Origin: Anthoceros angustus | Taxonomy: Eukaryota > Plantae > Anthocerotophyta | Direction of reading: 5' to 3' | NCBI GenBank assembly: GCA_010909165.1 | Contig: VJWM01000331.1 | Location: 1 to 58,286 of the forward strand | DNA: 58,286 bases | Notes under the pieces: generated by a model | Database searches by the model: none | Seen by the model: only the letters and a program-made list of their open reading frames with translations | What the model was told of the DNA's origin: nothing | Shown: piece after piece, positions 11,399-40,341 of the stretch | How positions within the stretch are numbered: the stretch's first letter is position 1 | How the letters are laid out: each line of letters starts with the position of its first letter | Made by a program: the position numbers and the translations under genes

Positions 11399-11601
11399 AT
11401 GTTTTTAACGTTATGAATCTGGTTCAATATTATGAAATAAGTACCACGTAATGTGGTCATACAAGTTCTTTTCTTGAAACTATTTATCGTCAAAAACCTT
11501 CATGTTTTTAACGTTATGATTCTTGTTCAATATTATGAAATAAGTACCACGTAATGTGGTCATACAAGTTCTTTTCTTGAAACTATTTATCGTCAAAAAC
11601 C
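11399..11601. repeat. Tandem duplication, 2 x 103 bp, just downstream of the neprosin stop
   Basis: GTTTTTAACGTTATGA...TATTTATCGTCAAAAACC occurs at 11401 and 11504 with only two visible substitutions. Confidence 0.95.
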
Positions 11602-12170
11602 GATGCTTGGACCCACATTTTCTTTCTACATTAAATATTCCTCATTATTTTATTGTGTCGTCAAAACAAGTTAACGTCATTTTCCTTTGAAATGAATGTG
11701 TTGTGTATTGGCTGATATGCATGTGTGTATGTCATAGACACTTATAAATGGGGTGCGTAACATACTGTAAGAGATGGTAGAACGTGCATAACATTATAGG
11801 CTATTTTATTCGCATATATCGATTTCACATATGTAAACTTTAAACAATGGCTCTGCATGATAAGGTTGCAACTGTGTGAGGCCTGCCGGCAGTATTGCTT
11901 GATCAGAGTGCATGTAGGGATCCATGATAGTACAGCACCTGGTTGCAACCTTGTTGTAGGTGCAGGCTGTAAGCATTGTGTGCGCAGTCAAGGCCGCCGG
12001 TAGCCCGATTCCAAGGTGTCACCTTCCCGCAGTTGTTTGCTAGAGAGCACGAAATTATAATTTATTGTTGCAACACTAGGCCCGGATCCTCCTCCCATAA
12101 GTGGTACTTGTGGTGGTACTTTCACTGACGGCCAACCGAGCGCACACCAATCCCGCGTCGTTGCAATATG

Positions 12171-12379
12171 TATGAAAAACCAGAGGCGCTGGATTTAAGT
12201 CAAGAAAGCTTGACATGATGTGGTATCACGAAGAACAAGTGCAAGCAAGCAGCCAGAATGCTTAGATAAAATAAAATAAGTGAGCATACACATAAAACGT
12301 AAATTGTAGTTTAAATAGTGTAAACCTAATGAACCCCATACGCCTAGGTTACACATATACTTAATGTATATTTTTCATA
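12171..12379 (-). repeat. Copia 3' LTR (209 bp)
   Basis: Direct repeat of 18348-18554. Differs by one substitution plus one short cluster (GCAAGCAAGCAGCCAG vs GCAAAAAGCGGCAG). Preceded on the minus strand by a short PPT, GTGGGAG. Confidence 0.96.
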
Positions 12380-13210
12380 CTCCCACATAACCTAGGCAGT
12401 ATGCATTTGCGAAAACGGGAAGTATAGTCCACGACAGAACGGGTTCATCAGTCTTCGTTTCACGAGCAGGGCACAGAAGCACAGCGGCGGCGGCAAACGC
12501 GTCTCAGCTACTTGCCATAGTCTTTATTACGATCGGCGTATGCTGCGCCATAATCCAGCGGCAAGGGTCGATGACGACGCGCAGTGGGGCACGCTACCAG
12601 CCCATAACAGACGATGATGGAGGCACTAGGATTGCAGTCTCTAGGAGGGAGAGAACAGCTAGGGCACATACAAACAGCACAGCGCCGCACAAAGCAAGGG
12701 AATGGAAGCCCTTCAATCTGCAGCACTTCATGAGAAGCTGCGGCTGGGAGGTAGAGATAGCGGCGGTGTGGTATGCAGTGCAAGCGAATCGGGCGGCCGA
12801 AGTGAAGGAGGAGGAGATTGTGTGGGCGCTGAACAAAGCCTATTGCAGACCCTCTCGAGGCATGAGTAAGGTGGCATGAGGCTATCGGGACTCACTACCC
12901 GGTGAAGGCGTGATAAAGGAAGAAGCGGAAGCGAAGAAGCGCAACTCCACATAAGGACAAAGGAAAGAGAGGCGCAAGATTAGGTGAGAAACACATGCTT
13001 CATCCATGCTCCCTCTTACTGAAAGCATGTCACAGTCATGTGACCGGTATCTTGTTTGTGATGTGTGCCACAGGGCTCACAGATGGGAAAAGTGGGAGAG
13101 ATGTACAGCAAAGGCTGAGATCTGGAAACCTAAATTATACTAGGCTTGAAGATCAGGAGACTTAGGTCCCCACCCCCTCCCCCCACATAGGTCAGAGAAG
13201 CTTAATACCT

Positions 13211-13486
13211 TCAGAGTAGATAGCTGAAGTCTCTGAGTCCCAAGGACTCCATATGTAATGAATGCTTCAGCTTTGGCAGTGCCTTTGTCAATATGTCTGT
13301 TATGAACATGTAGAATCTTAATAATTCCTCTTGATCAGTGTCTCTTATGTAGTGATGTTTAATCTCGAAGTGCTTCGTTCTTGCATGGAAAGCAGGATTA
13401 GCGACCAACGCGATGCATTTGTTGTCACATATACGACGGTGGGTTCCTTCGCAACATGGAGGTCTCTCAAGTAACCACGCTCCCAC
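13211..13486 (-). pseudogene. Copia RNase H remnant
   Basis: CDNKCIALVANPAFHARTKHFEIKHHYIRD...DILTKAL. Confidence 0.92.
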
Positions 13487-13899
13487 TCGGCCTCTTTTGC
13501 GAGAATCGATCAGCGATATGTACTCACCTCGATTGGCGAAAGGGCTATTGACATCTGTTTTTGCATGACCAATTCACGGCACCACGGCCGGAGGAAGCGG
13601 TATGTCGATGCTCTTCAGTGAGTTAGGGTCGGAAGCCCGATCGGCATCCGTATAAGCGAGATAGTGTGAGGCCGGAAGGCAAACCCGACTTGATAGAAGA
13701 GGCCAGCGTTGATGTCCCTTTGAGTAACGATTCGTTTTGAGCCCAATGCACTCGTCCGGGCTTCTCAAGAAATTGGGACACGAGCTATGAAAGCAATCTC
13801 TGGTCTTGTCCAATTGGAGATGTAAATGAGGCAGACGGCATGCACATGAGGATCTTCTCCATGTCGGCAAGTTCCTCGGCGGTGGTTGCACATTGGTCA

Positions 13900-14600
13900 G
13901 CGATTAACTTTACTCCCACAGGCACAGGTGGATCTTGGGCGCTTGATCAAGCTGAAATCTCCTCGATTATCTCGGTAAGGTATTTCTTCGGTGAATTACA
14001 ATCAGGCCTGTGTCCCTGTGACGTAGCACCTGGACACCTAGACAGAATTTTAAATCTCCCACATCCTTCATCTCAAATTCAGTTCTAAGCAAATTTTTAA
14101 CCTTTTCTAACATGTCAAAATTTGTGCAGGCAAAGATACAGTCATCTACATATATGGCTAGGATGCAAAAAGCTAAACCATCAACAAGGTAGTACACAGA
14201 AGAATCAGCAGCACTCTGGACGAAACCAAGACTCTTAAGGTGAGTGTCTAATCTCTTGTTCCACAGCATGGCACTTTGTTTGAGGCCATACAGGGCCCTA
14301 AGAAGCTTGAGTACCTTCCTTGGAAATTGTTTGTTGATGTAGCCTTGAATTCCATATATATCTCCTCTTCAATTTACATGTAAGAAGCGGTACATACATC
14401 CATTTGATGCGATTTGAGATTGAGCTCGTGACTATAGCGGATGATTCTAATCGGCTATCGACTACGGAGAAAAGGTCTCACAGTAGTCGAGGCCAGAACT
14501 TGACTAAAGCCCGTGCAGTCGAGCCTTATACAGCAATCTCACCTTTAGCATTTAGCTTAGTCTTGAAAACCCATTTATTCTGACTTGACCGGCAAGTCTG
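13900..14600 (-). pseudogene. Copia reverse transcriptase remnant (frameshifted)
   Basis: HQMDV, EEIYM, WNKRLDTHLKSLGF, LAIYVDD, EFEMKDVGDLKFCLG. Confidence 0.93.
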
Positions 14601-15235
14601 TGAGTACCCATGTTTTGTTTTTGAGTATGGGTGATATTCCTCCTCTCACTGACTTGATGGATGGGCGTCGGAGAGGCTTCATCCATGGAGCAGGTCCGGA
14701 TCTGAGAGGGCACTCCGGGGAGCAATGCCGGGGACAACCATGTGTCTTTGAAGAGCGATAGTCAATGGAAGAATAAGGTGGGTCTTTCCATTGGGAAGGA
14801 GGAGCCCATCTTAAAGGATACTGGTGAGGAACACACTGTGAGCAAAGCCTCCTCCTCCGAGATAGCGGGGATCTTCAAGGGGCTCAAGATGCAAGTCATA
14901 ATCAAGATCCGGTGGAGCAGGTATGGGTCGCGAGGCTCAATGATGGGTATGGAATCCGGAAGGATCGGCATCGGGAGGCGGGATCGGGGGATCTGGATTT
15001 GCAGGGCGGTCTTGGCATCTGGGTGAAGATTAGCGGGACCTTGAGGCCACCCAGGAAAGATAGATGGAGGAGTCTCAATGGAATCGGGGAAAGACTCATC
15101 ATCGGAGGAATCCAGATCGGTGCACTTGACGAGGAGGCGAGGCAGTTCTTTGAAAACAATCGTGCAAGAAAAGGGGTAAGAGTGGTGGGTCTATCGGCTT
15201 GTAGGCTTTAGCCTCATCTCCATATCCTACAAAGA

Positions 15236-15990
15236 TTAATGCCCTTGATCATCATCTAACCCGGCGTTTTTACGGTGGGATATAGGCGTGGCGGTGGGGC
15301 CAAAAACTTTGAGGTCTTTGTATGCTAGGTTTCCGTCCCAAAATTGCTCAAAAGGAGTCTTACCTTGAAGTGAAGTAGTGAGAAGACGGTTTAGAATGTA
15401 GGTAGCTATTAGGGCTTCTGCCCAGTACTCAGGGGGCAATGATGCCCATCTCAACATGCTGCGGGTCATACCCATGAGAGTCTGGTTCTTCCTCTCGGCA
15501 ACCCCGTTTTGCTGTGGGGTATAAGCAACGGTGAGTTGACGAAGGATACCATTTTCCTGGAGGAAATCATCAAAGGTACGGTTGCAGAATTCAGTTCCAT
15601 TGTCAGTTCGCAAACATTTGAGTAAACAGCCTGACTGTCTCTGGGCCATGAGGATCCATTCCTTGAAACATGTGAAGGTATCACTCTTACGGGACATGGT
15701 ATAGGTCCAAGTAAAACGACTGAAGTCATCGGTTATTGTAAGATAGTACCATGCTCCTCCTAAAGATTGTGTTTGCAATTTACCAGATATGTCAGCGTGA
15801 ACCAAGTCAAGGAGGCCTGAAGTTCTGAAGGCATGGTGTGGAAAAGGCTTCTCTTTTTGCTTCGCCAAAAGGCAGGCCTCGCAGATGGGCAAGTCTTTGA
15901 AACATAAAATGGTAATTCCATATATGATCCTGGGAACATTTTATTAGTGAATTCTTGTTGACATGCCCAAAGCGAGCATGCCATAACCCT
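15236..15990 (-). pseudogene. Copia GAG-pre-integrase + integrase core
   Basis: LWHARFGH; CEACLLAKQ; LDLVHADI; TDDFSRFTW; LRTDNGTEF; TPQQNGVAERKNQTL; YWAEA. Confidence 0.95.
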
Positions 15991-16199
15991 TTGTTCACTT
16001 GCAGGCAAATGTCTTTGGAGAAGTTGATGCGATGACATGACTCGATGGGAACTTCACAAGTCACATCCGATCGGTAAAGCTCGTCGGGGACTCCGGCCAA
16101 TGCACCCCATTCCTTTGGAGGAGAAGACTTCACAAGTTGTCCCATAGAAGCGGAACTCTAGGTTGTGTTGGATTGCCAGGAGTCGGACGGACGGCAGAT

Positions 16200-17365
16200 T
16201 CTTCGCCATTCGGTACATAAAGAATGCACACATGCGACCTTGAATTATCAGCCATAAGAAAGCAGCGGTGCAGATCCACTGGATGGGTAAGCTCGTTGAA
16301 CGTCGTTCGTCACCCGGCGGACAGCTGAGTCGAAACTTCCTTGAGCTGGAAATTGTTTGTCTTTAAATATTAATGCGATTGCGCTGAATCTAGGTACCGG
16401 TGCCGGGGCGCTCGATGATGAGGAGAGACAGATGGTGAGAATCTTGACCACTGCTTTTCCATTCTCATTTTGAGATCTTTCTTTCGCAACTGTGTTAACC
16501 TCTGGCTTGGGACGACGGGGCTCGCCTGCCTTCTTTTTGCGGCAATCCCTCTCCCAGTGCCCTGGCACGTTGCACCAATTGCAGCTACCAGGTTTCTTGG
16601 TTGAGGAAGAAGATGAACCAGCAGTGGTCGGACGACCTGAGAATGCTGGTCGTCCTCCTCTTCCTCGCCCTCTCCAAGAACCTCCACGCTGGCGTGAGGT
16701 GTAGAGGACTCTGTCTGTCCGAACCTTTCCAGAGCCACCTGGATTGTGTCGAAGTCGACTCTGCTCTTCTTGATACAACGCAGATATCACATTCTCAAAG
16801 GTTCCACAGTTCCAGTGCCACGTTACGGCTATGTAGCCCCATTTTGTAGTGACACAAAGTTTGGTATGATGCGGGAAGACTAAGCGGTGAGCAATAGCAT
16901 CCTCTTGATCATTTTGGTGTTCAAGAGCAAGGCGGGAGGCGAAGATGTGAAATTTGCTTGTGGGCAGCCACACTTCACCCTCCCGCATCTTCAAAGTGTA
17001 GAACTCCTGTGTCTTTGCACACTTGGTAAGCATCGTCTTGGACATATGTATTGATTCCAAACTTCATGGGCTTTGGTCAAAGATTCCATATCTGGAATGA
17101 GAACTTCATCAAGTCCGTGGATCAAGAGAGCAAGAGCAACACTGTTGACTGAGTTCCATTTGTCAACATCAGCTTGTGTTATAGTGGTTCCAGTTGCAGT
17201 CACTCCAGCAGAAGGAAAAACTGGTTCCGCGTAAGATCCATCCACGACTCCCCATACTCCTCTTGCACGCAGAGTGGTCATCATACGTACACGCCATATG
17301 TCAAATTTCGTTCCATTGAATCTGTCTTGTGTTTTCAATTCTGCTGTAAAGGTTGGAGCGACCAT
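16200..17365 (-). pseudogene. gag: Copia gag + degenerate aspartic protease
   Basis: FNGTKFDIWRVRM...GVWGVVDG (DUF4219-like); CNWCNVPGHWERDC knuckle; protease traces FDSA..., ADNS, LYVPN..KNL. Confidence 0.88.
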
Positions 17366-18336
17366 CTTGTGAGATGGAACTGGTTGTATAAGCGGAGTTG
17401 AAAGGGAAAAAGAAGGTGGATTGGGAGGCGGTGGTGGATTGGATGGAGATAGACTCTAGGTGGAGCGTGGTGGGCTTGGAGGTGTCCTAAAAGCCCAAAA
17501 CCGTCTCTGAAATATGTATGGAGATAAAGGAAGCTAAAGAGGTAGTCTCTAGCGAGACATACATAAATACAAAACCACCATAGGCAGGCGTTATCTAAAG
17601 AAAACTCTTTTAGGGTTTCATTTGGCTTTTAGCGAACTAGAAAAGACCAACTAACTCTTGACTTCTTTTCTAGGGCATGGATGGCTTGAAAAGCGGTTAC
17701 TAGCGGTCTTGAGCCGGTGAGCGAGAAAAGGGGTAAGCGCGGGAAACCCCGAACCATCACCATGCTAGAAAAAGCAGGTTAGATCAATCGACCGCTCCTC
17801 CTCGGAGGGCGTAATGTGATATTCGAGATCTGCTTGTCGGTCCTTCAATTTGAAAATCTAACAAATAGTTTATGAATTTTAAAATCTGTTGAGTCCAGCC
17901 TCATAGAAAAAGATTGTTGTCTACGGACAGCAGCGTTTAAAATTCCTTCCAAATTACGTACCTCGGTGAATATCACGCAATGTGTTTTAGATGTCTTGGT
18001 ATCTCCGTCTGAGGCTGCGAGAGAGATCGCCTAACAGGCGGTTTTGCTGAACAGTGATCTTGTTTGAACAATCGTCCACAACTGGTACAAGTGGATGTTG
18101 TAGCGATTCGTGTAGATTTTGATGTGAAGTATTGCGGCCTTGACACGCCAATAATTCTCGAGGATCAATTGATCACGTTCGACCTTTGTCTCAACCCATC
18201 CGAGGATCTTTGGTTGGAATACGAGGAGGTCTTTAGAAAACTGGCCTTGAGAAGGTCTTTGCAAATCCTCCTCTTCCACGAATCCACAATTCGATTTATT
18301 CCTCGGCATTGCAACTTTCACATGTTCGACGCATGT

Positions 18337-18347
18337 GCTCGATACCA
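18337..18347 (-). promoter_or_regulatory. Copia PBS (tRNA-iMet-like) TGGTATCGAGC
   Basis: Directly follows the 5' LTR end; the canonical form is TGGTATCAGAGC. Confidence 0.9.
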
Positions 18348-18554
18348 TATGAAAAACCAGAGGCGCTGGATTTAAGTCAAGAAAGCTTGACATGATGTGG
18401 TGTCACGAAGAACAAGTGCAAAAAGCGGCAGAATGCTTAGATAAAATAAAATAAGTGAGCATACACATAAAACGTAAATTGTAGTTTAAATAGTGTAAAC
18501 CTAATGAACCCCATACGCCTAGGTTACACATATACTTAATGTATATTTTTCATA
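18348..18554 (-). repeat. Copia 5' LTR (207 bp)
   Basis: Direct repeat of 12171-12379; PBS on one side and TSD on the other. Confidence 0.96.
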
Positions 18555-19146: not shown

Positions 19147-21349
19147 TCACTCCCACTCACTATGAACTAGGTGTGAAGAAATGGCTTCAAAATAAGCCTA
19201 ATAAGGCTAGTTAGCTCCCACTAACTTGAAAGCTATCCACTAAGGAAAACAATTAAAAACTGGCTTAAGTTACATTTAAGCAGAATTTAATGTAATCAAA
19301 ATTAATTACCAAAAACTTAATTAGGAAATGGTAAATTCCTAAACAAGGTAAAAAGATAAAAGTAAAACTTAAACTAGGTTAATCTTAAACCTGAAAGAGG
19401 TAAAAGGTGAAAAACCCATTAAATGGGCAACGGCCCGGGCCATATGATGGCCGTCCGTATGCCCATGGGGGGGGGCCATACCGTTATGTACCCTCCCCCC
19501 CTCATACGGTTTTATTCCGTCGTCGTCATCACGCTCCTTCGCGCTCCTCGCTCCTGTCGCGCTCTCCTGCTCAAAGAAAGGTCCTTGGCCATGGCCCATG
19601 TAAAATCAGTGCGGGGAAGGCGCGCGTCCGTCGGAGGACGCCGTCCCCGGCGCCCCGCGCCGCCATCTGTTGGAACCCCGTGCACGCAGGGTTGGAGAAG
19701 AATGGACACCGGCCTACCTGCAGCAGGAAGAAGGAATTGGGAGGCGGCCTGGGAGGGATCGCGCCCCTCTGAGAGCGCCCCCTCACGGCGTGCCACAGTG
19801 ATCTCTGCACCTCCCCTGGATTCCCACATTTGTTGAGAGTCCACCACAATTTCCTGGTGGTAGGAAGTGGTCTGGCACTCACGTTGATGTTGAAGTCACC
19901 CTTGGAGAGATGGAGGTCGTCCCTGGTCTTTGGAGGGCCTTGATTGATGTGTCTTTGCCAATGCGGGAGTACCTCACTCAGGCCGGGAAATTGGAGAAAG
20001 ATACTGCCCCCATGTCTTGTCTTAATTTGTTGAAAGTGCCTGCTGCCAATCCCAAGCCTAGGCCTGCTCCAAATGCGCAAGTCACCACGGTGTTGAGGAA
20101 GATTCCAGAAAGTTCTTGTGGAGAAGAAATCGCCTGAAATTGCTCTCTCTGACTCAACTGCCTTGGAAGAGTGTTCATGGAAGAGCTTCCCTGCTTCTGC
20201 TGATGGAGACGAGGCTGAAATTTCAAGTAAGGCACCCCCTGATTGTGTGTAATAAGGTGTCAACCCCTGTCATGAAGGGGAGGCACCTTAGAGCAGGATG
20301 AAGAATGCCTCCCCCCACCCCCCCTTTTTGTAAGGAAGAGACACCAAGTTGTAAGCCCGTTTGTGGGCATCTTCAAATGACCATTTTCCGGTTCAAAATA
20401 TCAAGGAGGTCTGCGTCACGGCTAGCGGATCTCGCAGGATCCAGGGAGGAGGATGAAGGCCCGGTGATAGCACAGGCGGCGCGGCGGCAGGAAGAAAGGA
20501 GCCCGAGAGGAGGGACATGGCGGGCGCCACTGGGAGGTAAGTCTTCCGCACCCTTCTGGAAGGAAGGAGGGGCCCAGAGGGCCATAGAAGGAGAAGTCAC
20601 AGGAGGACTTGGGACGACGTGGAGGTCCGGTGGGAGGATGGACCCCAGAGTCATGAGAGAAGAAGCCCAAGGACCGAGTCCGGGACTCGAAAAAAGGCGG
20701 ACCGAGGTCCGGACCCAGTCGAGACCGGACCGAGGTCCGGACTCGAAAATAAGGCGGACCACGAGGTCCGGACTCCAGAAGTCCGGACCGAGGTGCAGGG
20801 CGATCAGGCGGACCCCAGGTCCGGACTCGGGAGGCAGGGAAAGTCCTCACCGACACCTCGGGAGGGGCAACCTCCTAGGGGCCCGAGGCAGGGGCCCACC
20901 AGCGAGGAAGGTGAGGAGGATTTGGTGGTGACCTTAGTGAACATGCTATTGATGAAGGGGTGAATAGAACCCCTTACGGTTGAACGAAACCTCCTTCACT
21001 AATAACACATGGTTCCAAAAACCGTGTTTTTTCTGATTTCGGTGTCCCATACCATGGACAATGATTCCTCTTGAATCGCGGTTTGTGAAACAACAAAACG
21101 GAAGGAAGGGTCGAGGCGGCTGGCGGCGCCAGTAGTCAAAGTAGTGCGTTTGTGCGATGATCCATTTCCACAACGACAAGAGGCCTAGTAATAACACAAC
21201 AAAACTAGGTATGGAGTGCGTTGACTCAAGCGGTTGGAGACCATCCACATTTTAAGGTTCCGCCAAAATTGACCACTAGACGGACAATAGTTCACACAAA
21301 GCGTCTACACGTGGGCTAACGTGACTCAACCGGTGCTTGCGACGAATCA

Positions 21350-24300
21350 TAAACTACAGTTCCGTATCCTCAAGTTCTTCCTCGCCGAAAGTGTCGACTT
21401 CAACCAAAGCCCTCGAGTCCTCGTTCCCATACATGTCTTCATCATTACCATCGCCCCATGCGCGTTCGAGTGTTTGTTGGCCAGCAACTCGCCGATCTTG
21501 CTCTTATTCCGGCACTCAAAGAAACCACTTGTGCTTTCAAGGAGTCCTTCTCGCTAATACAAACCTCCTTTGCCCAGGCGCAAGTCCTCTCCGGTGGGAG
21601 CTTCAAAATTCAACTCCTCAAGCTGCATGGGAGCACCTCAAATCCATGAATTCTTTGTGAAATATAACGCATCTCAAGTCGGCCTCGATGGCGATACAAC
21701 TCCTTCACGCAAGTAACGCTGCCAATAAAGTTGTATGCGCTCCCGAGCATGCATCCACAACCCAATCTCCCTCTTTGGAAGGTTGTAATAAGTCTCATCA
21801 TCAACCCTAGTGGTCTCTGGTAGGCGGACCACCAACTTGTCATGTGACATGTAAACTTATTTTTGACAAGCGTATGTGAGCAATGACGGACCTTCCATTG
21901 TTGAAAGTTCTGCATAGCATTTGGTAGCATTGCAATTACATCCTTTGCTCCCATCCTTGAGACCCCAAGATAGTTATGTATTCCACAGTCTCAAATCCAC
22001 CCCTGTCATTGTTCATGTTTGTCTTGTCCCATACGAACGACACCAAGCCCCCTTTCCTGCTCCACTTTCTCATTGATTCTCTAATTGTATGTGCCTTCTC
22101 CACTCCATGCATCACAATCATCCTCAGTTCATCGCTAGTGGTCTTCTCAGCAAAGCTTTCCAATTGTTTATCTCGAAAATAAAATGCTGGAAGTCAGCTG
22201 GGAGTTTTGTCAGCACTTCGATGTCTTTCAGTACTGCGAATCGATCGTTAGTCATTGTCAGAGGCGCCCGGCGGCCCTCTTCCGTGTTGGATTGAAGGCG
22301 GCTGCGCCCTACAAACCCTATGAAGCGGTGAGGGCACCCGGCAGTGCACTTTCATCAAACATAGACGGGGGCGGTGCGGGCGCCGGCGGCCGGCGCCACA
22401 GCATCGATCCCGGTCCTGTCAAGCGAAAAAAAACTTGATGCGGACATACCTTTCCGGAGAAGGTGTTTGGAATCGTGCTAGCATATTGTAGTAGAATGTG
22501 AAGGATACTCCTCGCGCACCTCTTCAAATGACGAGCAGCCCAGATGCTTCACCATTGCTACTTGTATGATATGAAATTTTTTTCGAAGTGTGATCTCTTC
22601 CTCCATCCCTTGGATCTATCGGTCAGTTAACACCTTCTCAGTGGCGCTTATCAGTATTTGTTGGCCACACTCTCCAAGTGGTATTCCCTGAAAAGATTTC
22701 CATGGCTTGGCCAACATGTCTCTAGGCTTGACGTACACACTATCAACACTGCTTGGTCATCCATGTTGCCTTTCCCTTTCTTGCTTGTCCCCAGAGCGTG
22801 TTTCTTACGTGCAGAAGCTCTCCTGCTTCCCATTTGGAAAAATCTTGTCCACATTCTCCACACCTTCCCATCACCTTAGCAATACAGAATGTGGGTCCGA
22901 TTGTCCACTTTGTTACCTTGTACACGTCGTCCTCCCCCTTCATCGTCTTCAATCAAACCTAGGACTTTATGCAGTTGTATTTCCGGGACATGGTCATTTG
23001 CACTTCTTCCCTCTTTGCGATGATCAACTCGTCCCTTAAATACGACTTGCTCTATAAAGTTCATCTTCTTTCTCGGACATCATATTGTGATCTTGCAAGC
23101 ACCGCATCTCATGCAGTAAGCCCACAATACACATGTGCTTCAACATATTGGAACCGCTTCTTTCGGGTGAGATATCCGATAAGTGCTTCATAGCTGCGTG
23201 GGTGTGGTTACCACCAAGAACTCCCATGACATACTTCTTTGCACGCCATTGCTTCCGATCCGGCTTGCTCGGATCGGCACACTCGCTCGGATCAATCATA
23301 CACAAAAGAGGCGAACTCCCTCCTCTATCAGCCCTTCGCTATAACACGGGCAAGATAGTTTGCCAAGCCTCATCAACCCTCCGGATCTGCGGCGTGCGGG
23401 TAATGCTTCGGTCTCAAGTTCTCCAACTTCACTAACCTTTCTGCACCACCTTCTTGGTGTCGAGAATCCCTTGCGAGTCAATGGATCTGCATCCCTCATA
23501 GCCTCTTCCAACCTTTCCTCGTCGGTTTGAATATGAACTGTGGTTATGTCCCCTCCAATGGCATCTTCTCTTCCACCCTTCTTTGCCTTTTTGGTTTTCC
23601 TTCCAAATTCTCCGTCCCCGCTGTGTGTGCGGCTGCTTCCTGCACTTCCCTTGCCCTTGCGCCTGCCACTCGAGGCTGCTACAGTCGTTTCGGGGCATGA
23701 AGGTTGAGGAGGGGCGCCGGCCGGCCGGCGCTCCTCCTCTTCTGCCTCCATACCCACATCCCCTGCATCCGCCATGTCCTCTTCTCCAGGACGAACTGCC
23801 TTACGACCGGTGCCATCTTGCTCTCTTCCCTGTGTGGTGGGAGGATTCGAGGCGCCCGGCCGGCCGCCCACCTTCCTTGAATCTTATAAACCGGTCCGGA
23901 TCGCGTTGGCGGCTCTTGGGGAACACGAAGATGACTAGGCGGCCAGGCGCCCGCGCATCCGGGTCATATTGCATGGTGGGAACCATAGCGGAAGTCGGAG
24001 TTTAGATTGGGAAGGTCCTCGGCATCTCTCCGATTCCTGTGCCCCGGATCCTTGTCAATGCTTGACCAGGTAAAGCCCCATCTTCCTCTCGATGGGCCAA
24101 GCTCACTCTCCTCATGATCTTCTTCCATACCTTCCACCACATCACCAGTTCTACGTATGGGCTTGGGCTCGGCGCATAGACATTTCCTCTTGTGGGCCCT
24201 CATAGTTTGTGTAATCTTTTGCAGATAGCTCGTATGAGTGCCCTCGCAACTAGTGGTGCACGGAAGATGGTAGGAAAAACATATCCACAATGTCGTTGAC

Positions 24301-25034
24301 TCTCACATGTGAAGCTGCGAAGGAATGCTTGGGCAATACTCTTACTCTGTCGCATGGAATCGCGGAAATCTTCAACAAGGCCAAGAGGTGCACACTTCTT
24401 CCGTGAAACCCTTTCGGGCTAAGAACAAGAGACTTGTATAAGCGGATCGGAAACTTCCTCATCTTGGTATGCCTTTGTGGTGCACAAAAGTGAACTCGCT
24501 CGCCTTCATTGAAGTCCAAAGTAGCCCAAACAACCCGACCCGCTCTTGCTCTCGATTTGGCGAGCCCCCTATATCCCATGATCCACAACTTCAACAAAGG
24601 GTCCATGGCGCATTGCGGTCGATGGTATGGATCCCACACAAGCATCCAGTCCTTCTCCACAACCACAACATTGTCTGCCCGGATACACTGATATGGATGA
24701 TCTCCTCATATGGTAGTGAATCGATGGAATAGGTTGTTTCGCTCTTACCAACCTTCTTAGTCCCTTGCTCTCCAACAACCTTTGTGGGGATTTTGGCGGA
24801 GGATGCCCGATTTTGCTTGCCCCAGAAGAATGCGCCTTGTTGGAGCATGGCTTCGGATGGCAAGATGTCTCCAACCGGCGACCTGGATGGAGGTGCCTCC
24901 GCGATGTCCGCCGTGGGCGCGGGTGCTGCTCTCGCCTTTGAGCTTCCTCTGGCCTTCTTGGGCTTCTGCCGCATGGCGGGCAGGTCATATTCCTCCAAAG
25001 GCTGGTCCTTCTTGCTCCTCCTGCCGCTTGCCAT
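21350..25034 (-). pseudogene. Multi-domain gene remnant: unknown N-terminal domain, acidic/low-complexity linker, ParB/Sulfiredoxin-like domain, helical region, amino-MTase-like domain
   Basis: Starts MASGRRSKK (ATG 25034). VRLFCVMIDP...YVMGVLGGNHTHAAMKHL (GGNHT 23201-23215)...VEAHVYCGLT...HN; possible intron donor GTATGT near 22450; then the MTase motifs. Many frameshifts; fusion into one protein is inferred. Confidence 0.6.
21660..22250 (-). pseudogene. Beta-class amino (N4C/N6A) DNA methyltransferase-like domain remnant, copy 2
   Basis: RMIVMHG...SFVWDKTNMNNDRGGFETVEYITI...AYQRPLGLMMRLITTF / KEGDWVVDACSGAHTTLLAALL (uninterrupted frame) / CIAIEADL at 21678-21825. No DPPY/SPPY motif recognisable. 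Confidence 0.72.
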
Positions 25035-25700
25035 CTTCAGTCTCTGCAATTGAAGGCAACCCCACTCCGTAATCACAAAAGAGATGCACAAACAGCCCTG
25101 GTGACCGCTAACTCACACTCCGAAGATCGCGCCTCTCAAGAGCTTGGCCTTTATCCGCTTGCGAGCTTGCTGTCCGCAGCAAAGTTGCGCTCAACGAGCT
25201 TGCGGTCTAGGCGGCGGGCGGCGGTGTGGCGCCTCACTCCCGGCATGCGGCGATCCGGCGGTGGTGGTGCGCTCGGCAGCGACAAGCGGCGGTCCACGGT
25301 GGTGTTTCGAAATCACAGGCGTGAACTCGTCGGTGCCTTACAAGCGGTAGCCCTTAAGTTCAAAGAGGAGGCCTTAACGAGGCGAAGTTAAGCGGCGTGT
25401 AAAAGTAGGGTTTTCTTCCATAACCCCAAATGGTTTTCATAACCGTGTTTCTCTAAAATAACCCGCTACCTTAAACTCAATTTTGAGCTTACTATTTTAG
25501 CACCCGCCGCCATCAACTTTTCGCCGCGGTGGCTGCGCAATTATGCTTGGATTTTCCGTTACAATCACATGCCTGACCGTCAACCACTTCATTGTCCGCA
25601 CTTATTTGAGGCAATCCCATCAACCTCTTAGGCGGTGGCACTCGGGGATGCGAGGGCCGGCGCCATATAAAGCCAGGAGGGAGGCTTGATGTCAGCTAGC
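25035..25700. promoter_or_regulatory. Putative bidirectional promoter region between the divergent genes of element X
   Basis: Non-coding spacer conserved in copy 2 (~50000-50560), e.g. GTAGGGTTTTCTTCCATAACCCCAAATGGTTTTCATAACCGTG. Function inferred from gene layout only. Confidence 0.3.
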
Positions 25701-26399
25701 CACTACGGTGCTCTGCAAAGTCTTGTGCTTTCCTTCCTTGCGCATTCGATAAGTGCGTGCGATGTTGCATTTGGCCTTTACGCTGCGGAGATGAGGTTGG
25801 TCTTGTTTCGCCATTGTCTTTTCCACGCATACCATTCATGATAGATGCAACTTGTGCAACGACCATGCACGTGGCGCGAGGAGGTTCAAGTGGAGGACCG
25901 GGCCCTCGCAATTCAAAGAAATGGAGACATGGTCCGAGGAAGAGGCTCGCTATCTTGAACGCTCCTCCAAGTTCACATATTCGGTGCAATACCCACGAGT
26001 CCTCCACATGAAGGTTTGTTGTGGTTACCACTTTTCCCACTTTTGGAAGGCGGTCGTAGCTTGTTAAGTGTATTCGCACCGCCCATGTAGGCTCTACGCA
26101 GGCGTCGACACTTGGCGTCACCAAACATGCAGCGGTGTGCCTCACCCGCGGAATTTGCATCTATCTGTGACCATTGAGGAGCCCATCTACACGCCTCCCG
26201 GATCCGGTCGAGTCCTCATCCCTCAAGCTGCGTGAGAATGGACCACTGTTGCCGCAGGATTGTTTGATGGTGGTCACGGTAGAAGACCTCCCAGGCGGGG
26301 AGCACGAACCCTCCGAGGATGAAGATGAAGGCGACCCACACTGCACCGCGTCGGTCGTTCCATCCCAAGCGGGGTGAGGGCGGCGTCAAGCGAGCAAAG

Positions 26400-27855
26400 C
26401 ATTGCACCTCAAGCGGAGACCAGCTGGTGTCACATTGAAGAAAAGTGAAGGAGAGGTAGTGACGGCGGTTCGAAACCATGTTGCAATCAAATGTGCTTGC
26501 GGTGACAAAGAAAAGTTTCGGGGAGCGGTACCGATTCCTAAGGATGGGCGGGCGAGCAAGAGACATTTCTAGAGTCCTTGGTTCAGAGAGGGGATGTGAA
26601 AGGGGTAAAGTATGCACACACATTTTGGGGTCCATTAGGTCTGTTCTTGCTTGAAGGCATTTAGAAGAGTATATTGCATAGGGCACAGATATGAGGAACA
26701 AGAGCGAGAATCATTTGAATGCCCGTGGGATGGTTTCGTGCCTAACCCCAAACCCAGCCTTCTTATGCTGGGGGGCGATATCCGGATGGATAAGACATTT
26801 CTAATGATGGCCGCGGTGCCGAACGTGGAGGTCTTCAACCTTCCGGACACATACACAAGGTTGGAAATATGGAGTATGGTTCTGGTGCGCTCCTGATTTC
26901 ACGTGCTCACTCTGCCGTCACACTGGAGTGGGAACCTGGATCCTGATCCGATCAAGGTAATTGTTACCACTTTCGGAGGCTGGTTGACATGCATGGGAAC
27001 TTATGACAATGGTTTTCTTGAGTGGGGAATGGTTGTTTTGAACTCGAGGCTTTATGGGCAAGATCCCTATAACCGGGTCTTGAGATCTTTGTATGATGGG
27101 ATGGGGTGCGGCCGATGGGCGTAGTCCATACAAAACCCTTGGGATGAAACCACGAGAGGCCATGTACATGTGGTGGGGCCGGCGGCCCGGTGGAGGCCAA
27201 GAACCCTATGGTGCCGTTAGAAGAGATGGCGGGCGGCGGCCCACCTCAGTGCTCTTTAGCACCATAAAATTCCGTCGAGGATACCAATGCCAACGCCCAC
27301 ATGGCGGAAGGACCGGGTCACCCTACAATTTTATACATGTGGTGGGGCCGGCGCGCCCTCAAAAGCGAAGGCATGGATTGTGGTTGCTCGTGAAATGCGA
27401 CAATTGTTTGCAAATGCGCTAGGACGGAACATGAAGGTTCTTCCTCCGTTGATTTGGCGGGGCGTCGCCCGGTGTCTTGTCGACATAGGAGGGTCCTTCA
27501 TATCTAATCGGATGTCTCTTCAAATGTACGGCGAGTGTGTATGTTTTCAAAAGAAAATATCAAGCGGCTTTAGATGCCCATCGTTTGCGGTTACATCGAG
27601 CGGTGAAGATGGCGAAAACAAGCAAGAGTTATGTAGAACCACATATGTACCTTCTACTTTCAATCGATGGAATGGACCAAAAGAAGACGGAGATTCCCCA
27701 TCTACTTCGATGGCCAAAGAACTTGGATGAGGAGTGCCGTATTCAGGTTCATGTGGTTGGGTGCATGATCCAAAATTACACGTTTAAGGCAAGAGCTTAC
27801 TTGCATTATGCGAACTTGCGGAATGATGCCAATCTCACGATTACCATCATCCAGG
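26400..27855 (+). pseudogene. Sola-like (DUF7869-type) DDD transposase, copy 1, cut by a CACTA insertion
   Basis: KPCCNQ..., KAFRRVYCIG, KCDNC (27391-27410), LLLSIDGMDQKKTEIPH (27663-27680), VHVVGC, NDANLTITII, then an abrupt switch to CACTACAAGAAA. Confidence 0.75.
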
Positions 27856-30800
27856 CACTACAAGAAACATGGTGTCCATGTTATGGTGTTTTATAACAGG
27901 ATTCGGGGTTTTTGTAACGTTTATGCCGGTTTTGTAACATGGATTAGGCCGTGTCCCGGGCCTCGGATCATTACAAAACACATATGAAGGTCGTGACAAC
28001 AAAATTTGTTACACACTTTGGGCCCGGTTTGGTGGAGTCGAGTCGGTTCCGCCTTGTCGAGTTTGTGGCCTTTCCGGTCCACGCATTAATTACCCATCGG
28101 GTTTGTTTTCAAACTTACGCTCGACATCCCCTCCGCTCCCGAATCATTCCGGCCGCGTACCGGTCCTTTCGGCGGTGTCTGTCCTGTCCCGACATTGCCG
28201 CCCGCCCGGACATGTGGCATGTACATCCCACGGGCCCCATGTCGTCTCGAACCGCCGACATACGTCCGATCGTATGTCGGTATGCCGTCATGTCCGCTCA
28301 TTTGATACATACGTCGTGCATCGGTGATGCTATCTGAAGTCGCGTTATTTGGTCAAAATCACAATACACCGGGTTTACCCACCTAAGCACATGTCTATGT
28401 CATTTCATGGGTTTTGTAGTTTCGCGGCCTCGACATCTAATTATACTCGCGGGCGTGTTGGCTATTCGCTCATGACACTTTTGCGCCTTTGGCTCTTTTT
28501 CGCATTCCGTACAGTGCTCCTTTCCGCTTTGTGCCTTTCCATCGTTGGTTCTCTTGATGGATGGTTGCAGGCCCTCCACATTGCCGTCCATGACCGTCGC
28601 ATGAGAAGAAACATTAGTGCAGAACTAACGGGCAAACCTCATGAGTCCATCAAGACGTCTCGATTTCGCGCCTCTCTCTTCGACGGAGGCCTTTGTCTTC
28701 ACCGCCTCGTCGGCGCCTTATGCCAAGGCGTGGCCACCTATCGCCCGCTTCTGTCCGCTCGAGCAGTATACACTTCCTCGAAATCGTCGTTGTCGATGCC
28801 CCTCCACCTAGTGACTCCGATGTGCATATGTGTGAGATGCGCTTTTTCCATTCCGCCGTTGTCTTCATCCCCATGCGCCCCCCCTTCTGCATACTCTTCT
28901 CCGTCCCTCTCGTCCTCCAGCACCCGTCCTCGGAATTTGTGTCCTCGTATGTGTCATCCCCATCCGGCTCTTCCCCACCGTCTTCATCCTCATCAGCACC
29001 AACATCCGAATCGAATTAATTCCGCACCTTACAGATTGCGTTTGGCCTCAAGGGTTTTGGCATCGCGTTGAGCCCTTATTATGACCCGCAGATCTTTGTA
29101 AAGTCGCCGTGGTTCTCCCGCTTCATCACATCCAGTTCATGCATTTTCGCTAGTGGTAGTGCACCAAATTCGCATTCTTTCGGTTGGGGCTCTCCCATAC
29201 TTTTCTTGGAACTTGAACTCCCCCAGTAGCGTCCACTGGCCCCATGGGTTTGGCCCTTGTCCATTGGATTTCTCCAATCTCGCCTTTCAAGCGATGCCTT
29301 GACGGCAAAAGTTCCGTGTTATCGAGTTCAACTCGTGCCCATGTGACAATATCCCTCCACACCTTTTCATCCGATGGAGGTTTCAAAGCTGCTTTTTTTC
29401 CCTACTCTTCTCCGCTAAGGCGTATGCCTTTCTTGCCTCCACATATCTGTTGTTCCGCGTTGGTGTCTAAACTCCGACCTAATCATGGACTTCACCAGAG
29501 ATCGGGGAAGCCACACCAGTTCCTTCCTCCTTACTGCGACAAGTCGCTCCATTTGCCCGGAATCTCGCTTTGCGCTTTGCTGCGGATGACTTCCATGAAC
29601 TTCTTGTGCGTGGCGACACAGGCCACCAAATGTCAATGGTGGCGGCCGGCGTCGCCACATTCCCTTCCTCTTGCCCGCCACTTGTTAGCTCCAACGGTTG
29701 GTCCGGACCCACCGCAATCCCCTTTTAGTAGTATTGCTCCGACCAGCTCCTTGTTGTCCATGTCGTCCGCACTGGCCCATGTTTGACAACATGGTGCCTC
29801 CGTGACCGCTGCTGCAAAATTCCCGCCCGCCGTGGAGTGCCAAAGCGAGCTCTGCGGGCACTACGGCGTGCCATTACACTCGGCATCTTCTTTGTGAACT
29901 GGAACCTCGTCGGGACATTTTCCTCCGGCGAGGTCCTCCCAACATCCATGTCCTCCTCGCATCGCATCCGGATCCCATATGGCATTTCCATGTGCTCCCA
30001 ATGTCCACCCTTAGAAATTCTGCGCCACATCAGCACGACATCGCGGCTCGGTTTTGCCGAAGGCGTCGTATGCTTCCTTCGACAGCAAATTCATGTCACC
30101 GTGACCAAAATGCAGGCGGCGCGCAGCTTTAGTATCAAGCGGACATCATGAACATGTTCAAACTAGTGTATAAAGGTATAGGCGCCGAAACCATGTCTTG
30201 TCTGGAGTTCTCCTGGAACCAGAGGTGCGGACTCACGAATCTTGGGTCCCGATGTGCAAGGCATTTCGTGCCGTTAGGATAAAGCGCCAAGATGGGAAGG
30301 CGGCGTAAGCGAGATGGCAAACCGGCGGAATGGCGCAGATTGTAGCCTCTTTCAAACCCGTCGATTCCGCCCCCTCACGCATGCCGCGCCGGACAAAAGA
30401 CCACCCGTTTGCACTTGACTCCTGCCCGCGCCATGTGACCGAAATCACCAGCAAAGGGAAACTTGTTCCGACTCCATCTCGACATGGCGGGCGAAACCGC
30501 CAGACCCTCCCTCCGCCTTGCCCGGCGGCGGTCCGATGTTTTCAATTGATGGAATTCGGAATAGTTTTTGACACGGCAATTTATTGCACATCCTTACATG
30601 CGCGAGAGCGATGGACTCGCCCGATCGGCTACACGACTGACCGTTTTCCATTCCTGTTATCCCGCATGCCACCCGTTCTCATTCCAATTGCATGGGCGAC
30701 GCATAGGGTGACAAGTGTTACACGCGTTCCTTTACTCCTCTTCGTTACAACCGGCTTTGCAGCGTGCCGGAAGGCAAGTTTCATACATGAATCTCGCCGT

Positions 30801-33800
30801 TCACAATGCAATCGCAACAAGCCGCACGCCAAACACGCCGTTGCGCCTTTCCATCTAAGAAAGGGTGTGATATTCATTCCATTTCCTACTTCTTCCTCAC
30901 ATGAGGGCTGGTTACCAAGTCTGGTCTCTATTCCAAAGAGAGGCGGGTGCATACCGAGCTCCCAATCGGATTACTCCCCAATGACGCGTCATCCTCCCCA
31001 TATGTGCACACATTACGCAAGAATCGAATCACGAACCGCTTCACCGCAAGTTCCTCCGTGTTATCCGGCATCTCTTTGTATTTTCGGGATGGCGTGTTGT
31101 CCGTGTATGGCGCGTGGGCGATCGATGCCTTCTCCTTCAAATTCACCTCCGATCGTGCACCCGGACCTTCATCCGCTCGCCTCCACAGACAATGTCCTAG
31201 GGTATGGATGTGTGCGGGTTCGCACACATCCTCCGGCGCCCTCCTTGAACGCGCGCCACTTTTGGTGTCCGTTCGGTCATACCGCGTCGCAGAAAAGAGA
31301 TGACTCGTTCGCATCTCCATCCATAGGCCCTCACCATTTATAGGCGGTCGTGGGTGTCGGGCATAATGTGTCCACGTTTAATTGGATATTAATATATACC
31401 ATTCTCCAAATTTATGCGGCATCGTTGGTTTGCCAAGGATCATGTCGGTTCCGTGCCTACATATGTCACATGTCGGTTCCGTGCCTACATATGTCACATG
31501 ACCACATGTCGTATGTGGAAAATGTCCATATTTTCCGCATACATGCGCGCATTTATAGGCGGTCGTCCTTGGGTGTCGGAATAATTAAGTACCATTAGTC
31601 GATTAATACATTATTGAATGTATTAATACACTATTCGATATGTCATCCATTATCCAAGGATAATTCATCCGTCCTCCCAACCTCTTGTCTATATATGTCA
31701 CATTAGCTTCATGTGTATGTGGTGTCCATACATCCATATGCCTCGTCCTTGGGTGGCGGGAATCAATAAGTACCGATGTCGGTTTTCGATGTTTTGCTAC
31801 ACACCATTATCGAAGGGTATATCCTCGGCATCCCATCTTTACGCCTATACATGGCACATGACCTTCATTGCGATGTGGTACATGTCCATGTGTTCCGTAC
31901 ATCACCCTCACCATTCACTTGTTTTCGCAGACACACCTACATGCTTGTCGGGCAATGGGTCTTGCGGGCGTGCATCATGAACAAAATCTTCTTGCGCTAA
32001 CTTGATTCCCGTGCGCTTGTGCGGGCGCGTGCCCGGCTTCTGTCGTGCGTAATGCGCCGTGATGCGGCGCATTTCTATAATTCATCGATGGTTAGCCATT
32101 CCTCGGGCCATTGTTCCAAAGCTGCGTTCTGCGCTCCGCAAGCTTGTCTTTTGTGGCGACTCTTCACTTTCATGCGTTTAGTCCTTCCGCGCCCGACCTT
32201 CCCGCTCACCCCGTTTTGTGCACTTGCAGCATCGGTGGAAAGTGTCTCGGCAATGGCGCGCATACGCCGCAATAGGGATCCTTTTCGGCGGAGATGGAGA
32301 GCATCATCCGCGGACACAGGGTCGGCACAGGCGTCTCGCCATTGCCCTCGCGCCCGCAATCGAAGAAGGAGCTCCCTGGGTTCTGCTGAGTCCCGCAGAT
32401 GCCTTGGATGCTTTCGCAGCGCGTGCGAGGAGGTAGGTGTTTACTTGAAATCACACGGTGGATGGACTTGGTCGGCTCGATGTTTGGGCTTGGTTCGTGG
32501 ATGAGCGCCAAACTTGGTGGGTCCTTCTTAAAGGTGGAGAGGCAGCTGCGGACAAAGCCCGCCATAAATGACCAGGTCGCCACCTTCCATATGGTGGATA
32601 GTTTTTGGAAAAGAAGACGATGGCATAGAGCGGAATTGTTGTTGACTTCGAACATCCGACATCTCGGGAATAGTGCGGTATTATGCATCTCTTGTTATTA
32701 GCCTAAAGGCGAATTGAGCTTGTAAGCGTCCATACATGCGGGGTAGTAGAGGTTTCGTTAGTTAGGGTTTCAATGGATCGTTTCACTTCCTATCGAAGCC
32801 GTCACGTTGTCCATCACGCTTCCCTCCTTCGTCCTCCCTCCACCCCGTGCGGGAGTGGGCACGGCTAATGCCCACCCCTCTCTTCGTCATCAGCATGTAG
32901 AATACATGGGTCACTTGATTTGGCCATATGAATGGGGTATCGACATCATCGCGTCGTGCAATAGCGCCTAGTGAACACGCGGTGGAAACCGTGATCGTTT
33001 CTATCAACGAAGGAGATCTGCCGTGCTTGCACTCGAACCACTTCACCTTCGTGGATGAGTGGTTCGTACCCCAGCAGACGCAGGATTTCTTGGACATGGC
33101 CATAGTAAGTCCGCTCCCTCGCCCCCCATGACGTGCGGGTGAACACACATCACTGTGTCTTTCGACTCTTAAATGCGATCGGTGGCTTCCTTACATGCCA
33201 TGTGCTGTATGCGTGGCCCAAAGGGACGGCCGTCCATAGCTTCACCACATCGTCGGTGAGATGGGTGAATCTTCCGAATCTCTGCCGGCATGGATCCATG
33301 CGAAAAGATGGCTCTCGTTACTCCTTGTTCCACTTCCTCCTTGTCTGCAAGAATGGGTCTAAGATTTGGATGTGGACCAAGATGAAAGTGTGGACTGGTG
33401 CAACTCGCGTCGTAAACTTGTATGGGCGTCCCATGCCTAATGCCTTTCTGTCGCATTCTTCATGAACTTATCGCTCCAAATATGGGAGGGAGGATAGTGT
33501 TCACTAAGGACGACTTAGCATCTGACAAAGATTCCTCCCTCACATATCCCTCCGCCATCGCCCTCGGGTTTTCTGACTGTCTAATAGTGTCCTTCCGCTC
33601 CCCAAATACCTCTCCACAGGATACATCCAGCGACACTTACGGGCCCAATGCCGCAACATCATCCACCAAGTGAATAATGAGATGCGTCGAAAATATCAAA
33701 CAAGTTGGGTGGAAATTCTCTTTCCGGTGACACATGACCGATGCACTCTTGTTGCATTCTCCCAACCTCATGCCCCGGAATCCGGCGTTGGCATATCCAG

Positions 33801-34305
33801 ATATAGTTCTTGGCGTTCACGCTTTGTATCGAGGGCTTGATTCGTCCCGTAAGACAATAGGAAATAAAATCTCCATGACAACATGCCAATCATGAGCTTT
33901 GAGGTTTCCCAGTTGCGGGCCTTGATTTTGCAGCGATGTTTGATGCGTATCCGATTGGTAGTAACATCTCCACAAAAACCATATCCAAGTCCGGCATGGA
34001 CAAGACATAAGGAGCAGGCAAGAAGGTCTCCCTATTCCCTGGCAATGGCCATAGCTCTTGCTTGCCCCCGCATTCCTCCATGTCTAAATGGGATCGTAGA
34101 TCATCTTTCTCTGCTATGAAGGTCTGCCACAAAGCCTCTGCATTGTTCTTCTCAATGTGCATCACATCCTTTTGTGTCCACCTCAGCATGTGTCTCCAAT
34201 ACGGTAGGTAATCAAACCATATGCTTTTGCGGCATGTGCCAAACTTGCCTCTCTCCCTCAACTCCGTTGTTGCATTATCTCTCTTTTCCATATACGCCAT
34301 CCCAG
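27856..34305 (-). mobile_element. CACTA (En/Spm) DNA transposon, 3' part; 5' end lost
   Basis: Terminus CACTACAAGAAA at 27856, preceded by AGG (candidate 3-bp TSD half); TGTAAC/GTTACA-type subterminal motifs; Tnp2-family transposase at the other end. Confidence 0.92.
32800..34300 (-). pseudogene. CACTA transposase C-terminal half (Transposase_21 end, DUF4218-like, DUF4216-like)
   Basis: KSIWFDYLPYW...DVMHIEKN; LPAPYVL; PIGYASNI; LKAHDWHV; FPPNLFDIF; YYGHVQEIL; KVKWF. Confidence 0.9.
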
Positions 34306-35095
34306 CGTGGTGCTTCCTTCACTTCCCGTGCCCTTGCACTCGAGGTCCTGATCCTTTGGGGCATGAAGGTTGAGTAGGCGCCGGCGCCCTCTCGCCTCCA
34401 TACCCACATCCCCCGCATCCGCCATGTCCTCTTTCTCGAGGACGAACCTGCTGCCCCGGTGCCATCTTGCTCTCACTTTGTGTGGTGGAGGGTTGAGGCC
34501 CAGCGCGGCCGGCCCCTGCACCTTCCTTGAATCTTATAAACCGGTCCGGAAGCTCTGGCGGCTCTTGGTACACATGACACAGGGCGGCCGGCTGCGCCCG
34601 GCCACATCCGGGTCATATTGCATGGTGAACCCTCACGGAAGGTCGAGTTAGAACATTGGGAAGGTCTCGGCATCTCTGATTCCTGCGCCCCGGATCTTTT
34701 TGCAGCTTGACCAAGCTGGTAAAGCCCCATCGTCCTCGTCGATGGGCCAAGCTCACTCTCCTCATGATCTTCTTCCATACCTTCCACCACATCACCAGTT
34801 TTGTATGAGGCTTGGGCTCGACGCATAGACATTTCCTCTTGTGGGCCCTCATAGTTGTGTAATCTTTTCGCACGCATGAGTGCCCCAACTAGTGGTGCCT
34901 CGGAAGATGGTAGTACAACATATCCACGTCTGACTCTCACATGTGAAGAAATGAGAAGGAATGTGGGCAATAGACTCACTGTCGCATGGAATCGCGGAAA
35001 TCTTCAACAAGGCCAGGACACTTCTTCCAATGAAACCCTTTCGTAAGAACAAGACTTGTACAAACGCGGATCTGAGAAACTTCCTCATCTTGGTA
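34305..35095. repeat. Element X copy 2, left fragment (matches ~23625-24469)
   Basis: Colinear with copy 1 (e.g. CCTTCCTTGAATCTTATAAACCGGTCCGGA) up to the Gypsy insertion point CTTCCTCATCTTGGTA. Confidence 0.9.
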
Positions 35096-40337: not shown

Positions 40338-40341
40338 TTTT

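Follow-up and report, generated by a model that had tools for sequence, protein, structure and literature searches.

A decayed Sola1-type transposon family in Anthoceros angustus with a divergently oriented accessory gene of putative beta-class amino-methyltransferase fold

The stretch analysed here (the window) is the 58,286 nucleotides at positions 1–58,286 of contig VJWM01000331.1 from the Anthoceros angustus assembly GCA_010909165.1. Self-comparison resolves within it three fragments of one transposon family, referred to as copy 1, the focal copy and copy beta, which are 78–85% identical to one another and are therefore old; they contain many frameshifts and stops and have received insertions of long terminal repeat (LTR) retrotransposons. 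The focal copy (20490–27860) comprises a left end, a minus-strand accessory gene, a spacer and the start of a plus-strand transposase gene. It is very probably the left three-quarters of a dead Sola1 transposon copy, from a family that pairs, in one element, an accessory gene having the fold of a beta-class amino-methyltransferase (methylase) with a divergent transposase of the DDD (Asp-Asp-Asp) type.

Copy 1 (6355–8313, minus strand) retains the left end and the 3' two-thirds of the methylase-like pseudogene. Its positions 6360–8313 share 85% identity with 20498–22414 of the focal copy, which agrees with the statement, in a preliminary description of this DNA made from the sequence alone, that a methylase segment occurs twice. 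Copy 1 is the more decayed of the two, and AT-rich DNA ends it at 8313. The left part of copy beta (34247–35097) consists of a 5' stub of the accessory gene and the beginning of the spacer; it is 79% identical to 23561–24471 of the focal copy, and the first ~107 codons of the accessory gene are thus also retained there. The right part (49515 to ~54525, plus strand) includes the remaining spacer and a Sola1 transposase that is broken but retains all three catalytic motifs. The spacer between the divergent genes, located at 23884–27488 in the focal copy, is 78–83% conserved with copy beta. Parts of the unit had been said to recur three times. This is true of the family termini, of which the window has three (two left and one right), whereas the other parts occur only twice: the left end with the 3' part of the methylase-like gene, and the spacer with the start of the transposase. 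Contigs from a public DNA run of the same organism reach a summed word depth of up to 294 over the family and include many variant letters as well as insertions and deletions (indels); the family is therefore multi-copy in the host.

In the focal copy the accessory gene is a pseudogene. A six-frame reading from 23883 to 21621 on the minus strand, which spans ~750 codons, requires six or more changes of frame and passes through no fewer than three in-frame stops. The predicted product would have had a disordered N-terminus, followed by a region of ParB-like motifs, a linker, and finally the beta-class amino-methyltransferase fold. The N-terminal part corresponds to a low-complexity (E/K/R/G-rich) stretch that is open at 23299–23883 in the list of open reading frames (ORFs). 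It is followed by the ParB/Srx-like region (23039–23413; two frameshifts and two stops), an assignment without statistical confirmation; by the linker (22352–23038), which has many stops, no recognisable domain, and no match in Pfam or PHROGs searches; and by the methyltransferase-like domain (21621–22351), which has three frameshifts and one in-frame stop. All of the motif strings quoted in the preliminary description are present in the window. On the minus strand of the focal copy they include GGNHT (23201–23215), YCGLT (23115–23129), FVWDK (22023–22037), ETVEYI (21975–21992), AYQRP (21811–21825), SGAHTT (21729–21746), and CIAIE (21684–21698), the last of which occurs a second time in copy 1 (7595–7609). 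The DNA contigs indicate that other genomic copies of the family differ by indels at the frame-change points. In simulations, a +TG variant behind 21945 merely recreated the copy 1 reading GWEHKG, and a one-base loss at 23176, also a contig variant, was of no help in joining frames.

The methylase-like domain was evaluated with a PF01555-type profile of 214 positions, built from an alignment of 13 diverse phage and F-plasmid enzymes. The focal reading was stitched, with an X at each break, prior to scoring. It obtained 43.0 bits (E value 2e-15, for one target) over profile positions 59–206 of 214, as compared to 6.4 bits for the best of 2000 shuffled controls. The alignment proceeds through the helix after motif IV, the (V/I)W.K and hE blocks, motif X (QRPLGLMMRLI), and then motif I (VVDACSGAHTT). 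The position of motif X before motif I in the stitched reading is the beta order, as had been proposed. An unbiased six-frame scan served as a guard against frames chosen to fit the profile. Among the 2273 segments of the window, the top three were 21708–21794, 21939–22193 and 7524–7745, all on the minus strand and all colinear with the profile, while two unrelated contigs used as negative controls gave at most 7.6 bits. In copy 1, three of the junctions bridged by stitching are read without a change of frame (NNWKAL-AEKTTS, GWEHKGVIAMLP, and LITTFSKEGDWV). When single pieces of the gene were compared to Pfam, PHROGs and PDB sequences, they gave no match or sub-threshold matches only. For the 29-amino acid piece with motif I, PF01555 was the sole Pfam match (E value 0.08), a value this weak because the gene is in pieces, and the same piece matched PHROG 67, annotated as DNA methyltransferase (E value 0.03). 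A protein atlas search with a methylase piece returned UvrD_C-type noise. A narrow profile from close enterobacterial relatives of the F-plasmid methylase reached 8 bits only, and was replaced by the diverse phage set. A beta-class N6-adenine/N4-cytosine (N6A/N4C) amino-methyltransferase fold is thus a well-supported prediction for the accessory gene.

The motifs diagnostic for catalysis and cofactor binding deviate from those of this class. No [DNST]PP[YFWH], the signature of catalytic motif IV, is present in any minus-strand frame of 21600–23900 or 7450–8350, and the profile alignment (59–206) stops short of the motif-IV region. By position, both copies contain two candidates, TNDRF (22241–22255) and EINNW (22160–22174, in focal coordinates), neither of which is canonical. 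We rejected EINNW as a certain motif-IV equivalent, since the spacing suits TNDRF at least as well. The S-adenosylmethionine (SAM) binding motif I does not follow FxGxG; it reads DACSGAHTT in the focal copy and DACPGAH in copy 1, the last Gly being replaced with a His residue in both. TNDR, EINNW and GAH are common to copy 1 and the focal copy. Judged from these motifs, the accessory product was probably not an ordinary enzyme, and, both copies being pseudogenes, the deviations may postdate or predate an active ancestor. An active DNA-marking module at this locus, as envisaged in the preliminary description, is not supported: the copies are dead, (D/N/S)PP(Y/F/W) is absent in both, and one RNA run of the same sample yielded no RNA contigs on the stretch, which is no proof of silence. 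Nothing at the locus is functional today; it is a fossil.

The ParB/Srx assignment (Pfam PF02195 clan) fared less well than that of the methylase. The strings VLGGNHTHAAMKHL, YVEAHVYCGLTA, and LQDHN, from the minus strand of 23039–23413, resemble the ParB N-terminal pattern, and a +C variant behind 23163, found in part of the genomic copies, places VLGGNHTHAAMKHL and YVEAHVYCGLTA in one frame when simulated. The region had no match in Pfam (E value up to 1) or PHROGs (E value up to 10), and our own ParB profile, built from six sequences of phage and plasmid ParB-methylase fusions, scored it at -3.3 bits, below the shuffles. No homologue of the ParB piece was found. The arginine-rich GxxRxxA box is aligned with GGNHTHAA, a stretch without arginine. 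A protein-language-model search showed ParB_N in 34 of the 100 named clusters nearest to the piece, and DUF6551 or DUF3723 in others. We regard this last result as a lead only, and not as a test; the assignment of ParB at this locus is unconfirmed.

On the plus strand, the focal transposase fragment (27489–27860) is recognisable only to ~27852–27860 when read across the truncation point, and ends after the IDGMDQ block (27663–27680), so that it includes the first catalytic Asp only. IDGMDQ, LQLDN and HDQIDQ had all been attributed to the transposase of this unit. The first is indeed present in the focal copy, but LQLDN and HDQIDQ are found only in copy beta, at 52.7–52.8 kb, where the three blocks follow one another on the plus strand (IDGMDQ, 52455–52472; LQLDN, 52679–52693; HDQIDQ, 52798–52815). 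The focal piece matches Pfam DUF7869 (E value 9.4e-4) at profile positions 1–45, and the LQLDN piece of copy beta matches it at positions 35–74 (E value 1.1e-6; 28.8 bits, above the curated cut-off of 26 bits), the profile positions of the two pieces being colinear. A transposase homologue search gave seven short proteins, one of them encoded on the contig L019. The focal transposase shares 48–58% identity (E values 1e-20 to 6e-25) with two intact DUF7869 ORFs, those of L019 and L020. The first of these, the 11.8-kb JGI metagenome contig Ga0643154_103302, has its intact ORF at 6221–6811 (DUF7869 E value 2.7e-43), which is 48% identical (E value 1e-20) to the window transposase piece. A 58-residue core fragment of the Sola1-1_Ec32 transposase from the brown alga Ectocarpus has 44% identity (E value 7e-14) to L019, and its two best matches in the window, 52771–52839 (12/17 identical; E value 7e-5) and 52611–52799, are adjacent to one another. 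On the basis of DUF7869, the identity to L019 and L020, and the Ectocarpus core matches, the window transposase is classed as a Sola1-type DDD enzyme, which bears out and narrows the Sola-type cut-and-paste transposon originally suggested. L019 itself, from an AT-rich eukaryote, has a GC content of 33% and six small minus-strand ORFs upstream of the transposase, also a divergent layout; none of these ORFs resembles a methylase, ParB, or the accessory gene of the window.

The family layout is a left inverted end of ~300 bp, the accessory gene on the minus strand, a 3.6-kb spacer, the DDD transposase on the plus strand, and a right inverted end. The left terminal inverted repeat (TIR) of the focal copy is located at 20490–20830, where homology with copy 1 starts at ~20498 (6360 in copy 1), and the right TIR, the presumed end of copy beta, at 57240–57540. 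Both ends are ~300 bp long and imperfect, 20497–20816 and the inverted 57538–57240 having 61% identity over 320 bp. The matched ends sit on different fragments of the family, and no single copy is intact. They share the 23-mer AAGGCGGACCACGAGGTCCGGAC (20751–20773 on the plus strand and 57340–57362 on the minus strand; 0 expected by chance), and the left end holds 28/56-bp subterminal tandem repeats (20671–20792) with GGACC-N2-4-GGTCC palindromes. This palindrome occurs six times in the window, as compared to 0.18 expected, and always in the family ends, within the 28/56-bp tandem repeats: four of the six are in the focal left end, and one is in the right end at 57344–57357. In the focal copy, no inverted end was found in the interval that separates the two genes, and copy beta repeats the head-to-head junction, i.e., the 5' end of the accessory gene, the spacer, and the transposase. 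Because of the inverted ends, the shared 23-mer, the palindromes, the lack of a terminus between the genes, and the junction repeated in copy beta, the location of both genes within one element is supported. The divergent arrangement of the two genes in a single unit, as first described, is therefore retained, with one pair of inverted ends around them. The subterminal repeats at 20671–20822, 6586–6722 and 57240–57362 include the short palindromes GGACCGAGGTCC and GGACCACGAGGTCC, each of which is followed by CGGACTCGAAAATAAGGC. In being arranged as tandem inverted-repeat units, they are reminiscent of parS arrays and of those reported next to the ParB-like genes that red-algal Plavaka elements carry.

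Sola1-1_Ec32 is a 21.5-kb element with 282-bp imperfect TIRs and a 4-bp target duplication, which was assigned to Sola1 by the best BLASTP match to Repbase Sola1-1_PPa (Dinatale et al., Genome Biol 2025, PMC12477816). A gene on the other strand from its transposase encodes a protein of 1104 amino acids with ParB-like and N4C/N6A methylase domains, predicted to be an active N4C/N6A enzyme (PMC12477816). Since this architecture is published, the pairing of Sola1 with a methylase is not a new system, as the preliminary description had suggested it might be, but a new host record. Sola1 was also already on record in a bryophyte, Sola1-1_PPa being from the moss Physcomitrella. Both the Ectocarpus element and the family described here have a Sola1 DDD transposase (the second and third catalytic blocks of the window, GHTH.QIDQ.FSCF.KA, are identical at 12 of 17 positions), a methylase-type accessory gene on the opposite strand inside the same ends, and long imperfect TIRs, 282 bp there and ~300 bp here. 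They differ in host, which is here a land plant; in their termini, which are AACCG...CGGTT in Ectocarpus and different in the window; and in the state and size of the accessory gene, which is dead here and ~750 codons long, as compared to the 1104-amino acid protein of a 21.5-kb element. A DPPY-type motif is missing here, the accessory proteins being set side by side by published description only.

Other systems share some of these features. In the red alga Bostrychia, the Plavaka accessory genes PAG2 and PAG3 encode N6-adenine-methylase-like and ParB-like domains, and inverted-repeat arrays beside the ParB gene have been proposed as self-binding sites (Petroll et al. 2025, bioRxiv 10.1101/2025.02.11.637652). 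In the window, too, repeat arrays, with GGACC-N2-4-GGTCC, adjoin the accessory gene. Those elements, however, belong to the CACTA/Plavaka superfamily, their domains are on separate proteins, and they have other partners (SET and a 2-oxoglutarate oxygenase). The PF01555 enzymes of phages and plasmids, including those of Wolbachia phage WO, Streptococcus and Ruminococcus phages, and the F-plasmid 'DNA methylase', have the same beta motif order and fold. In contrast to the window gene, they are prokaryotic and intron-less, contain canonical DPPY and FxGxG motifs along with recognisable ParB domains, and serve packaging or anti-restriction. A bacterial-type amino-methylase fold in a eukaryotic genome is likewise represented by MpDN4MT1a/b of Marchantia and N4CMT of bdelloid rotifers, but these host genes are both intact and expressed, contain a TSPPY-type catalytic motif, and have a proven output of N4-methylcytosine (4mC); in the portions of text searched, neither MpDN4MT1 nor N4CMT is reported as transposon-borne or fused to ParB. 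ParB-linked adenine methylases have been listed in chlorophytes and chytrids (Iyer et al.). The present family extends to a land plant the association of a eukaryotic cut-and-paste transposon with a bacterial-type amino-methylase-like gene, and adds two testable details: the absence of the canonical catalytic and SAM motifs in both copies, and parS-like palindrome arrays in both ends.

In an intact element, the transposase would cut and paste the transposon at its ends. The accessory protein would bind the DNA of its own element, most plausibly at the tandem GGACC-N2-4-GGTCC palindromes of both subterminal regions, where it might then methylate a nearby A or C, or else only organise or shield the ends. 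By analogy only, it could tie transposition to replication, much as Dam sites link the two in IS10, or protect the element from host silencing. Because the (D/N/S)PP(Y/F/W) loop is absent and the SAM-binding loop has GAH, a binding-only role or an altered chemistry in this lineage has to be considered, and we hold it to be about as plausible as true methylation. Any intact copies in other parts of the genome would offer a direct test of whether the accessory protein marks its own element or binds it.

A pseudo-enzyme, which had kept the methylase fold, lost catalysis, and served only to bind DNA or organise the ends, is the alternative that has to be taken most seriously, and we consider it a real possibility while not adopting it; it departs from the non-5mC marking module of the preliminary description. 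Neither copy has [DNST]PP[YFWH] in a minus-strand frame, both have GAH in motif I, the motif-IV region is missing from the profile alignment, and the palindromic arrays at both ends would be candidate binding sites. This argument is, however, built on two copies, which are 85% alike and both pseudogenes, so that the shared substitutions may stem from a dead, non-autonomous master copy, and the prediction for the Ectocarpus protein is that of an active N4C/N6A enzyme (PMC12477816). A more specific form of the same idea, in which the accessory protein gave up methylation and acted as a ParB/parS-like end-binding factor on the subterminal palindromes, assembling or shielding the transposition complex, seems to us unlikely. 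If true, it would mean that a prokaryotic partition-type DNA-clamping module has been reused by a eukaryotic transposon.

The reading of the focal copy as part of one Sola1 element with a methylase-fold accessory gene has several observations against it. A phmmer search of 1.84 billion representative proteins with a 75-amino acid methylase piece retrieved low-complexity repeat proteins only, none of them a true relative; ParB homology failed every statistical test that was run. None of the copies in the window combines a full-length accessory gene with a full-length transposase, and neither the exact termini nor target-site duplications can be defined from three diverged ends with no complete copy at hand. 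The right end at 57240–57540 lies 2.7 kb beyond the last recognisable piece of transposase, from which it is separated by an LTR fragment (about 54537–56326) and 0.9 kb of unexplained GC-rich DNA; it presumably belongs to copy beta, to which it is assigned only by inference. Finally, L019 has a related, intact transposase and no methylase within 6 kb upstream, in a co-occurrence test in other genomes where all further contigs with a related transposase were short. The lack of a detectable methylase at that locus, together with the mosaic of nested repeats that makes up the window, is what might be expected if a methylase-bearing element or gene and an unrelated Sola1 transposon had come to lie side by side through nesting. 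We think this improbable, since the terminus on the methylase side, which two copies retain amid different flanking DNA, is an inverted copy of the one that lies past the transposase; the 23-mer and the palindrome are common to these ends and found nowhere else in the window; no terminus separates the genes; copy beta repeats the junction from the 5' end of the accessory gene to the transposase; and the same layout is published for Ectocarpus (PMC12477816). That the accessory gene is instead a host gene among transposons, i.e., a domesticated writer of 4mC or N6-methyladenine comparable to MpDN4MT1, is very improbable. Domesticated bacterial-type N4C methylases do exist in plants and rotifers, but here two decayed copies occur in 58 kb, each adjoining the same inverted end, with multi-copy depth, frameshifts and stops, no RNA contigs, and no TSPPY-type motif. 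Still harder to credit is a bacterial or phage contamination of the assembly. The nearest recognisable relatives of the methylase are phage and plasmid enzymes, but this similarity is remote and at the profile level only, and the gene is pseudogenised, multi-copy, and embedded among eukaryotic LTR retrotransposons with gag and integrase and a eukaryotic Sola1 transposase.

The remainder of the window includes retrotransposons and unexplained DNA. Copy beta is split by a 14.4-kb LTR retrotransposon (35098–49514, plus strand) with TG...CA ends and 5.2-kb LTRs that are 88% identical, 35148–40335 matching 44382–49515. The DNA on either side of its ends runs uninterrupted through ~24470 in the focal copy, whose spacer thus contains the empty site of this insertion; the filled and empty sites confirm that the long repeats are LTRs. 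Further partial copies of the 5.2-kb LTR are present at 54537–56326, where a direct-orientation copy beginning, like the others, with TGGAACGC separates the beta transposase from the right end, and, as inverted fragments, near the start of the window (2341–3666), beside a retrotransposon gag ORF (1103–1681). A young LTR retrotransposon (12171–18554, minus strand) is located between copy 1 and the focal copy; its 209-bp LTRs (12171–12379 and 18348–18554) are 97.6% identical, and it contains an integrase core (15239–15892) and a gag zinc knuckle (16251–17060). Between the focal transposase and copy beta, 6.4 kb of unexplained DNA (27853–34246) is strongly strand-skewed, with a GC skew of about -0.2 and an AT skew of about -0.26, and includes long Ser/Pro-rich ORFs (28349–29071 and 30330–31343) with no Pfam match. 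The AT-rich block that ends copy 1 (8314–12170) has a GC content of 38–39%, as compared to ~51% around it, and includes a 103-bp tandem duplication (11396–11601) whose units are 97% identical.

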